64,000 nucleotides of DNA, taken from assembly GCA_976226885.1 (NCBI GenBank), contig OZ320317.1, positions 74,958,001 through 75,022,000 of the forward strand, given 5' to 3'. Below, one piece after another: positions 11,636 through 13,408 of this stretch. The notes below the pieces were generated by a model. That model had not been told where the DNA came from and searched no databases. It saw nothing but the letters and a program-made list of their open reading frames with translations. The DNA comes from Iphione sp. A-MEVVRFRX5. Its lineage: Eukaryota. Numbering within the stretch: position 1 is the first letter of the stretch; each line of letters starts with the position of its first letter. Both the position numbers and the translations under genes were made by a program.

Positions 11636-13408
11636 CTATTTGAGTGCTTGTAGCTTTTCTCTTAGAGCGTTTCGAGTATCGACCAGTATTTGACCTAGTG
11701 CGTTCTCGCCGGTGTATGACTTGTCGGTCAACTTCTCTGACGTCAGACTGACCCCCGCACCCCAGTGCTTGTCCACTGAAGCGTATACAATGTTGTTGTT
11801 CCCTGTATTCAGGAGTAATTCGGCAGCATCTGGATTCTGTAAGAATTTCTGTATTACGAGTTCTTCCATGACTCCTTGTTTTTTGGTGTCCCAGGTGGGG
11901 TTTTCAGGTAAGTGTTTTTCGCCTTTACGCAAGAGCCCAGAAGATTTTGTGCGCAAGATGTCGTCAGCCAGCGTGAGATTAGCAGAGTCTATCGCTTGTG
12001 CCCAATTATACGCCTGCCTGACACACCAGAAGTCATTTTCGTTCCATCGTAGGTTGCATTTGTATAATGGAGAGAAGGCATTTTCCTCCCCTGCAAAGAA
12101 TATCGTATCCTCCGTGTGCATCTGCCTAGCTTCATGTAGGCTCAGGTCATCAGGAAGATTACCTAGTTGGTCATGTCTGTAAGTATCGTCACCTAGTTGT
12201 ATTGACGACCATGTCACCTTAGTAGGAATGTCTTTCTTTTTGGCTAGTCTTGCAACCGAGCGCAGATCAGCTTGTCTCTTTCTTTCTTCCTCAGTCATGT
12301 CATTATTAAACCATATGTTTTTGGCGTTCTTTTGTCCTTTGAGTTTCCCTTTGTTCTTCATTACCTCCTGTTTTTTCTCCATACTCCGGAATTTGACGAA
12401 AACTCCTTTGATGCCAGTTCGATTTTTTCTCACCGTCCTTCTGCACTCTTCCAGGTCAGCATGAGTGAGCTTCACCCCCATCAGGCCAACTAGGTCTATG
12501 ACTTTTTTCCTGAGGTTTTCGTTTTCTCCTTCAGCTAATCCGTCAATGAATGCATTTTTCATTCGACTTCTTTTGCTCAGTACACCGATCTCTCGCTTCA
12601 GTGTGGATATGGTTTCATTCCAGTTACCTGTGTCCACATCTTCATTGATACCTTGTCGCAGTCTGTCATTTTCCTCCTCAAGCATTTTCACCTTGTTTTC
12701 AAGTTTCTCTATTCTTGTATTCATCGTTTTCAAGTCTTCTTTTATTTTCTTTCTGTCAATGTCTGCGTCTGCTATTAGTCCTTTGATTGCATTGAATTTT
12801 TTGTTTACGTTCCTACTTATACTGCTACACGTTTTCATACCTTGCTTTAGGACAGCTTGGAGAATCACTTTTAGGTCAAGTTCTTCTTCATCTATATCCA
12901 GTGGTTCATCTTCACTCTCAGTGTCACTATTGTCCGCATCTGTGCATGGTGTATTCGGTTTTCTTTTTTTGTTCGACCTGTGAGGCTGTGGCTTAGCTTG
13001 TGTTTGCGGCATGGGGTCCTCGTCGCACGTCTGCATTTCGTCATCCTCCGTCTGTGGATAACAGCCTGTGGTTGCATGTAGTGCATCAATGATTTTGTTG
13101 GGCCGTTTAGTTTCCTTTCCCAGGTGTGATGCCTCCTGTAGCTCTTTCGCTGCGATTTTTGCAAGTCCTTCTGCTAGACTAACACGTTTCGCTAATATTA
13201 CTGGGGTCAAAGCACAGGCGTTTTCTTTTTCCGTAGTACTGACTATGTTTGTGTCCCCAATTGTTTTAGTTGTTACAGTACCTTTTTTAGGCATTTCGTG
13301 GTGTGTAGTCCCACTCGGTTGCGTCGTCGCCCTCTTTGGTCTAGTCGCTTTGCCTTTGTTTACTTCCCGCTGCGGGATAGCTCCTTTGTTGCTCGCTTCA
13401 CCTGGCAT
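11636..13408 (-). CDS. LINE ORF1p, 590 aa: disordered N-terminus, coiled coil, L1-type RRM/CTD, C-terminal NADAR (YbiA/DUF1768)-like domain
   Basis: Heptad region IKEDLKTMNTRIEKLENKVKMLEEENDRL; RRM-like AFIDGLAE...VFVKF...IWFNNDMT; NADAR-like KF.QNP..AELLLNTG..IVYASVDKHWGAG...GENALGQIL..TR (~11645-12106). Confidence 0.9.
   Translation of the reverse strand: MPGEASNKGAIPQREVNKGKATRPKRATTQPSGTTHHEMPKKGTVTTKTIGDTNIVSTTEKENACALTPVILAKRVSLAEGLAKIAAKELQEASHLGKETKRPNKIIDALHATTGCYPQTEDDEMQTCDEDPMPQTQAKPQPHRSNKKRKPNTPCTDADNSDTESEDEPLDIDEEELDLKVILQAVLKQGMKTCSSISRNVNKKFNAIKGLIADADIDRKKIKEDLKTMNTRIEKLENKVKMLEEENDRLRQGINEDVDTGNWNETISTLKREIGVLSKRSRMKNAFIDGLAEGENENLRKKVIDLVGLMGVKLTHADLEECRRTVRKNRTGIKGVFVKFRSMEKKQEVMKNKGKLKGQKNAKNIWFNNDMTEEERKRQADLRSVARLAKKKDIPTKVTWSSIQLGDDTYRHDQLGNLPDDLSLHEARQMHTEDTIFFAGEENAFSPLYKCNLRWNENDFWCVRQAYNWAQAIDSANLTLADDILRTKSSGLLRKGEKHLPENPTWDTKKQGVMEELVIQKFLQNPDAAELLLNTGNNNIVYASVDKHWGAGVSLTSEKLTDKSYTGENALGQILVDTRNALREKLQALK

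Follow-up and report, generated by a model that had tools for sequence, protein, structure and literature searches.

To our knowledge, no enzymes other than NADAR hydrolases reverse the ADP-ribosylation of guanine on DNA and RNA. Here we describe a NADAR domain that forms the C-terminus of ORF1p, the product of the first open reading frame (ORF) of a long interspersed nuclear element (LINE) in Iphione sp. A-MEVVRFRX5 (assembly GCA_976226885.1). The element lies on contig OZ320317.1, in a stretch of 64,000 nucleotides (positions 74,958,001 to 75,022,000 of the forward strand) that we call the window; positions below count from its first letter. The residues that NADAR enzymes use for catalysis are replaced in this copy. 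The domain is most likely a maintained NADAR that is either non-catalytic or re-specified.

The closest relatives with known structures are the NADARs of Phytophthora nicotianae (Pn; 8BAU) and Escherichia coli (YbiA; 2B3W). According to PMC11543638, in Pn NADAR E43 and E125 hold the distal ribose, and K50, R79, W89, R93, W133, and D130 hold the phosphates. The same paper reports that the E. coli C7 (EcC7) NADAR requires K95 (the equivalent of K50) and D171 (the equivalent of E125) for hydrolysis, and that Lys50/Lys95 is essential for activity: only Arg can substitute for it, and Arg is tolerated in vitro. An E88Q substitution in EcC7 (the equivalent of E43) kills activity in vitro, and in cells, E88 substitutions give no rescue from DarT1 toxicity. 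At the last-strand position, YbiA has Glu, BC4488 NADARs have Asp, and phage NADARs have His (PMC11125620). At a sequence identity of 20–26%, the window domain shares with 8BAU and 2B3W the YbiA fold, the PF08719 signature, the WGxG loop, and, by alignment, the equivalents of Asp130, Trp89, and Trp133, which contact the ADP-ribose phosphates. It differs from them in being fused to a LINE ORF1p rather than free-standing, and in having Arg for Glu43, Gln for Lys50, and Tyr for Glu125: the residues whose importance mutagenesis has shown are absent.

NADAR domains have been placed on LINEs before. In Repbase, several Tx1 families of Crassostrea gigas have ORF1 proteins that appear to include a NADAR domain of the YbiA family (PMC12477816, 2025), and that paper also places a NADAR in the Gypsy Pol of Ectocarpus. 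It is the only paper we found that links NADAR to LINEs. Its treatment of the LINEs consists of one sentence and a supplementary alignment, without catalytic state, copy number, or selection. The window element and the oyster LINEs have in common a NADAR on a LINE ORF1p; the Tx1 label was given to the oyster families, and in the window family the catalytic residues are replaced. The ORF1p-NADAR fusion is barely described, but it is not new; what is new is the clade-level replacement, under selection, of the catalytic residues alone.

The rest of the protein resembles human LINE-1 ORF1p (2YKO/2YKP/2YKQ, 2LDY; Foldseek E 4e-7). In both, a coiled coil, putative in the window protein, is followed by an RNA-recognition motif (RRM) and a C-terminal domain (CTD), upstream of an ORF2 with apurinic endonuclease (APE) and reverse transcriptase (RT) domains, in a LINE that ends in poly(A). 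The LINE-1 protein ends after the CTD, whereas the window ORF1p continues into a 170-aa NADAR; the window element also has an extra esterase-like ORF between ORF1 and ORF2.

The NADAR domain and its catalytic positions

ORF1 occupies 11636..13408 on the minus strand (590 codons and a stop) and is intact in the window copy. The finding concerns the C-terminal ∼170 residues of its 590-aa product. Translation of the plus strand over 11636-12106 is full of stops, and the signal sits on the minus strand. Pfam, AlphaFold2 (AF2), Foldseek, and VIA-align place the YbiA-type NADAR domain at aa 422-590 (11639..12145, minus strand; Pfam envelope 12088-11660). The Pfam NADAR profile, PF08719, matched aa 441-583 over profile positions 9-163 of 163 (E 2.3e-21); its 77.2 bits compare with a gathering score of 35.1. 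When the Protein Data Bank (PDB) was searched by sequence, 8BAU was the sole match (E 2.5e-4).

We modelled the domain with AF2 on a 27-sequence alignment (A1) of domain copies from this genome. The model had a mean predicted local distance difference test score (pLDDT) of 91.3 and a predicted template modelling score (pTM) of 0.84. Foldseek found two significant matches only among PDB entries, 8bau (E 2.3e-9, template modelling score, TM, 0.76) and E. coli YbiA 2b3w (E 1.6e-6, TM 0.70-0.74), and no non-NADAR fold at E below 1. VIA-align gave Z scores of 19.9 for 8bau (root-mean-square deviation 2.3 Å over 162 residues), 17.5 for 2b3w, and 7.5 for the Geobacter lovleyi NADAR. On its predicted structure, the domain is established as a genuine NADAR fold of the YbiA type, a core of helices with a small sheet on either side. 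The original prediction, made from the letters alone, had proposed a NADAR-like domain fused to ORF1p with its scaffold motifs retained. Both the Pfam match and the alignment of the model to YbiA and other NADARs bear this out, on the minus strand, and the motifs are present as QKFLQNP, LLLNTGN, ASVDKHWGAGV, and GENALGQIL.

Four positions depart from this scaffold, all read on the minus strand. R464 (AGG, 12017..12019) stands at the first catalytic Glu (Pn NADAR E43, EcC7 E88), Q471 (CAA, 11996..11998) at the phosphate-binding Lys (Pn K50, EcC7 K95), and Y542 (TAC, 11783..11785) at the last-strand position where the YbiA subfamily has its defining Glu (Pn E125). In the SNF motif, P447 (12068..12070) replaces the Asn. 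The numbering of the reference positions agrees with the HMMER alignment to 8BAU and with the residues listed in PMC11543638. The substitutions had been called correctly from the start: SNF reads SPL, ExxYQ reads RQAYN, K-A reads Q-A, and VEAS reads VYAS. The positions that align with phosphate contacts (W506, K510, D546, W549, R494, and K498) are kept; the Pn residues compared at the phosphate and adenine contacts were W89, R93, D130, W133, K75, R79, Y84, and D86.

Catalytic state and selection across the superfamily

The NADAR domain is hugely amplified in this genome, where protein and Pfam searches turned up more than 4,200 first-look candidates each; the candidate copies number at least 4,400. 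The best 150 scored candidates of each genome search all had E values below 1e-23, and most lay in stop-free open frames of 450-700 aa. From 120 loci we obtained 114 domains that were nearly complete and lay in open frames; match ranking biases this sample, and the fractions drawn from it are indicative only. Glu43 was kept in 99 of these domains, Lys or Arg at position 50 in 103, Glu125 in 81, and the full E-[KR]-E set in 71; the SNF Asn was kept in 88/114. The R-Q-Y state of the window occurred once in the sample.

Searching 1.84 billion representative proteins with ORF1p gave 3,956 clusters at E<=1e-3, of which 966 reached E<=1e-10. The best of these relatives are only 28-33% identical to the query, over stretches that cover the RRM and the NADAR. 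Among the 142 top matches with a complete domain, 124 had E-[KR]-E, 135 had Glu43, and 134 had Glu125, while a single one had Tyr at the Glu125 position. A word-based protein search with ORF1p, using words from the NADAR part, gave no match at E<=1e-5; this blank reflects a sensitivity limit because the exhaustive representative search did find relatives. With E-[KR]-E in 71/114 and 124/142 domains, the NADAR-LINE superfamily appears to be mostly canonical and the window copy an exception to it.

The exception extends beyond one insertion. In a quick maximum-likelihood tree (IQ-TREE, with SH-aLRT as the only support measure), the domains L001, L003, L004, L005, L007, and L009 formed one clade (SH-aLRT 88). 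Three stop-bearing copies (L002, L006, and L008) were left off the tree and were assigned to the clade by their Tyr125 state and their rank among the nine matches most similar to the query. Tyr occupies the Glu125 position in 9/9 copies of this clade, which represent about seven families, and both TAC and TAT codons are used. Position 43 is Asp in six copies, Arg in the two copies of the window family, and Ala in L003; the residues at position 50 are Gln (five copies), Arg (three), and Leu (one). The substitutions are thus fixed across family copies, a point that the original prediction had left to be checked: R/Q/Y at 464/471/542 is common to both copies of the window family, the second of which bears a stop and lies on C15, and Tyr runs through the nine-copy clade. 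We then compared the clade at the 29 positions whose conservation among the 71 canonical domains is 80% or more. In the Tyr clade, 25 of these are fully kept and 2 partly, and the only ones changed are Glu43 and Glu125. The pattern looks like a targeted change of the catalytic pair with the scaffold otherwise preserved.

Is the changed domain still under selection? Synonymous sites between families are saturated for the Nei-Gojobori 1986 (NG86) distance dS, and we used the raw proportions of nonsynonymous (pN) and synonymous (pS) differences instead. Between Tyr-clade families, pN was 0.19-0.32 against a saturated pS of 0.77-0.85, giving a pN/pS of 0.2-0.4. The ratio of NADAR pN to RRM-CTD pN was 1.09 in the Tyr clade and 0.97 in canonical families; thus, the substitution counts give little sign that the NADAR of the Tyr clade has been relaxed relative to the RNA-binding core.

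Within the window family itself, the two young copies point the same way. Their NADAR domains differ by 10 synonymous and 5 nonsynonymous changes (binomial p 2.5e-4), and their ORF1 sequences by 30 synonymous and 17 nonsynonymous changes (binomial p 5e-10); over the three codon positions, the ORF1 mismatches number 8/11/29. From this synonymous excess, much of the divergence between the two copies appears to have arisen while the R/Q/Y protein was under purifying selection. We found neither neutral evolution of the domain nor its absence from young copies: the excess is synonymous, and the domain is present in both. The window NADAR is no decaying junk, and purifying selection on it is as strong as on the RRM.

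The LINE element and other NADAR loci

The window carries a full-length LINE copy of ∼6.65 kb at 6957..13617 (minus strand), made up of a 5' untranslated region (UTR), ORF1, ORFx, a spacer, ORF2, a 3'UTR, and an A-tail. A DNA search of the 1.18-Gb genome found exactly one other copy of this family, on C15 (L041). It is colinear with the window copy, 96.8% identical over 6,665 bp, and the similarity ends at both borders. In the C15 copy ORF1 has a TGA at codon 454, ORFx is intact (a 221-aa frame at L041:5729-6391, minus strand), and ORF2 is frameshifted.

The poly(A) tail of the window copy, ∼12-15 A, lies at 6958..6972 (minus strand), and its last 3 A are ambiguous with a flanking direct repeat. 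Of the two copies of that repeat, both on the minus strand, the upstream one (13618..13716) contains a (GA)n run, and the downstream one (6866..6960) directly follows the A-tail; they align over 99 columns (with 6960-6866) at 96% identity. The 96–99 bp repeat looks like an unusually long target-site duplication. Its two copies differ in the length of the internal GA run, and ∼11 extra bases separate the duplication from the start of homology to the C15 copy. The poly(A) tail, the target duplication, and the existence of a second copy rule out a host gene exon as an explanation of the locus.

Upstream of the NADAR, ORF1p has a helical segment at ∼aa 183-258 (12635..12862, minus strand), to which Pfam gives only weak coiled-coil and bZIP-type matches; an LE.KVKMLEEENDRLR block in this segment is kept across families. 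The N-terminus is less conserved, though it has conserved short motifs. The L1-type RRM and CTD follow at ∼aa 285-410 (12179..12556, minus strand; AF2 and Foldseek). We modelled aa 262-428 on alignment A2 (pLDDT 88.6) and obtained a long helix leading into a β-α-β-β-α-β RRM and then a small CTD. The best ten Foldseek matches of this model were all human LINE-1 ORF1p (2yko, 2ykp, 2ykq, 2ldy), with E values of 4e-7 to 7e-6. ORF1p is probably an L1-type RNA-binding protein, with coiled coil, RRM, and CTD, to which a YbiA-type NADAR has been attached, and the LINE itself a poly(A) element of very low copy number that was mobile recently.

ORF2 (7569..10352, minus strand) encodes the APE endonuclease and the reverse transcriptase (Exo_endo_phos_2 E 8.9e-9; RVT_1 E 2.2e-38) and has in-frame stops at 9329-9327 and 8171-8169. 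By eye, no Cys-rich motif was apparent in its C-terminal translation. Between ORF1 and ORF2, ORFx (10970..11617, minus strand) is a free-standing SGNH/GDSL-like esterase ORF, with an in-frame TAA at 11224-11222 in the window copy. LDSRG and DGCHPN motifs are visible by eye in its translation, and its Pfam matches are weak and under the cut-off (Lipase_GDSL_2 E 0.024, 15.6 bits against 32.9; Lipase_GDSL E 0.22). The element is tricistronic because of this additional ORF. ORF1 proteins of CR1/L2-type LINEs bear an esterase. The window element likewise has an accessory SGNH-type hydrolase 5' of ORF2, but as a separate ORF after ORF1 and with a sub-threshold GDSL match.

Elsewhere in the window, a 404-aa ORF with a C-terminal Cys-rich tail (17905-19119, minus strand) adjoins a 202-aa acidic ORF (19254-19862, minus strand); by eye, the pair resembles a split piggyBac-type transposase.

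Several other NADAR loci of the genome deserve mention. L014 (C10:11892134-11892667) and L015 (C15:35644097-35644630) have identical NADAR domains in a D-R-C state, in 627-aa open frames; this family, which is without the last-strand Glu, seems to have moved or duplicated very recently. A tandem array at C22:817948-830859 (L128 = 814000-823999) has at least 7 units of 2,063 bp, and the three units that we aligned are ∼98-99% identical. Each unit holds an ORF of ∼408 aa (coiled coil, RRM, and a NADAR in E-S-E state) and the start of the esterase ORF: what has been amplified in tandem is a 5' fragment of a LINE. The array was delineated by ORF spacing and unit alignment, the 2,063-bp period being above the 500 limit of Tandem Repeats Finder (TRF). 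A Logan contig from ERR14368249 (L125, 6,467 bp), which belongs to another public assembly, resembles it in arrangement, with two tandem NADAR-bearing ORF1-like genes (550 and 542 aa), each followed by an ORF of 110-129 aa. Finally, C22:27636365-27636874 (L031, L044) encodes a single-copy, canonical (E-K-E), non-LINE NADAR, which scores 176 bits to Pfam and lies within an open frame of 327 aa. No LINE-sized ORFs were present in the flanks taken around it (∼6 kb on the upstream and 3 kb on the downstream side). This is probably the NADAR gene of the host itself and would be a useful assay reference.

Function of the substituted domain

We put at roughly 60% the probability that the window domain is a non-catalytic NADAR module, which would either bind ADP-ribose or a related nucleotide adduct or be structural in the ORF1p particle. 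The ancestral LINE NADAR was probably an ADP-ribosyl-nucleic-acid hydrolase carried in the LINE ribonucleoprotein, because the superfamily keeps the Glu / Lys-or-Arg / Glu set that NADAR enzymes use on guanine-linked ADP-ribose (ADPr). In the ancestor of the nine-copy clade, the last-strand Glu would have changed to Tyr. Within the clade the first Glu would have become Asp and then Arg or Ala, and in the window family Lys or Arg would have become Gln. With the catalytic set replaced, the canonical hydrolytic mechanism is very unlikely in the window family, and we infer that hydrolysis has been lost. The domain probably works as a non-catalytic module; the alignment, in which the putative phosphate-cradling residues W506, K510, D546, and W549 appear to be kept, suggests that ADP-ribose binding may persist. 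The original prediction had allowed for a binding-only or re-specified variant, a description that fits the fixed substitutions and the purifying selection.

Several points weigh against a non-catalytic module. In EcC7, E88A has only a minor effect in vitro (PMC11543638). Because of this, and because phage NADARs use His at the Glu125 position, the NADAR pocket may tolerate some alternative chemistry, and Tyr could join an altered reaction. The adenine-stacking Y84 of Pn NADAR falls in an alignment gap, and D86 is Asn in the window. LINE NADARs are known here from sequence and predicted structure alone, and the 114 sampled copies carry the ranking bias noted above. The window family consists of two copies, both with a broken ORF2, and we infer its recent selection from 15 domain differences.

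A more specific proposal, which we consider a long shot, is that the Tyr-clade NADAR is a reader of ADP-ribose and not an eraser: a pseudoenzyme derived from a retrotransposon-borne hydrolase, through which the ORF1p particle would recognise chromatin or nucleic acid that bears ADP-ribose (PARP-marked DNA breaks, for example, or ADPr-tagged RNA). If this were true, the domain would steer the LINE ribonucleoprotein to ADP-ribosylated sites or shield the mark from host factors.

The main rival to the non-catalytic module is a re-specified enzyme, in which a Tyr/Asp (or Tyr/Arg) pocket catalyses another reaction, such as hydrolysis of cytidine-, uracil-, 2'-OH-, or phosphate-linked ADPr or of another N-glycoside, and the domain remains an active accessory enzyme. 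All nine copies, from families in which synonymous sites are saturated, have the Tyr, suggesting selection for Tyr itself and not mere loss, and all non-catalytic conserved positions are retained. Active NADARs tolerate Glu, Asp, or His at this position (PMC11125620), and NADARs are reported to act on more than one base linkage. However, in the window family position 43 is also no longer acidic and position 50 no longer basic, and the residue missing at 50 is the Lys50/Lys95 that PMC11543638 reports as essential, with Arg alone as a substitute. Moreover, positions 43 (R/A/D) and 50 (Q/R/L) vary within the clade, which is unexpected of an optimised new active site. We regard a re-specified enzyme as unlikely.

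It is also conceivable, though improbable, that catalysis is irrelevant in all of these LINE families: the NADAR would be a purely structural, RNA-binding, or oligomerisation extension, with catalytic residues that persist by inertia. When we labelled the tree by catalytic set, well-supported branches forced at least 8 changes and parsimony counted 20-21; many were changes of the last-strand Glu to A, L, Q, V, K, C, or Y. The two identical D-R-C domains on different chromosomes suggest recent movement without Glu125. However, many of the single-copy variants may be post-insertion mutations, and copies from many assemblies, though very divergent, keep Glu43 at a rate of 87-95% and Glu125 at 71-94%, far above what inertia would leave at 25-45% overall identity. 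Because both glutamates are so highly retained across distant assemblies, catalysis appears to be usually selected.

The original prediction had favoured an active counter-defence hydrolase, delivered in the ribonucleoprotein and directed against a host guanine-specific DNA ADP-ribosyltransferase of the CARP-1/pierisin type. PMC11543638 and PMC11833690 describe NADARs that reverse guanine ADP-ribosylation on DNA and RNA, and PMC11825919 describes orphan NADARs that phages use as counter-defence. RNA virus macrodomains and the T4-like phage NADAR of that paper resemble the window element in that a mobile parasite carries an ADP-ribose-removing fold. Those erasers are demonstrably active and have a known opposing transferase, whereas the window copy is without the catalytic set. 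Such a role is plausible, by inference only, for the canonical families; for the window copy, which has none of the three required residues, the proposed hydrolysis is not supported. Nor did the 1.18-Gb genome yield a match to PF22596 (Scabin-like, pierisin/ScARP), PF01375 (Enterotoxin_a), or PF03496 (ADPrib_exo_Tox), a weak negative since scoring was exon by exon, introns could hide a gene, and no control genome matched. We consider counter-defence by the window domain very unlikely. Neutral decay, in which the substitutions are random damage in a dead copy, would agree with the in-frame stops in ORF2 and ORFx of the window copy but is refuted by the R/Q/Y shared with the second copy, the Tyr found in nine copies of about seven families, the restriction of change to the two catalytic Glu among 29 conserved positions, and the strong synonymous excess.

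The window family shows that a NADAR on a LINE should not be annotated as an active hydrolase by default. It is also a natural experiment, in which the catalytic glutamates and the lysine are replaced and the rest is selected: comparison with its canonical sisters could separate the catalytic from the binding or structural contribution of the domain. More broadly, the existence of a large NADAR-bearing LINE superfamily suggests a link between nucleic-acid ADP-ribosylation and the control of retrotransposons in invertebrates.

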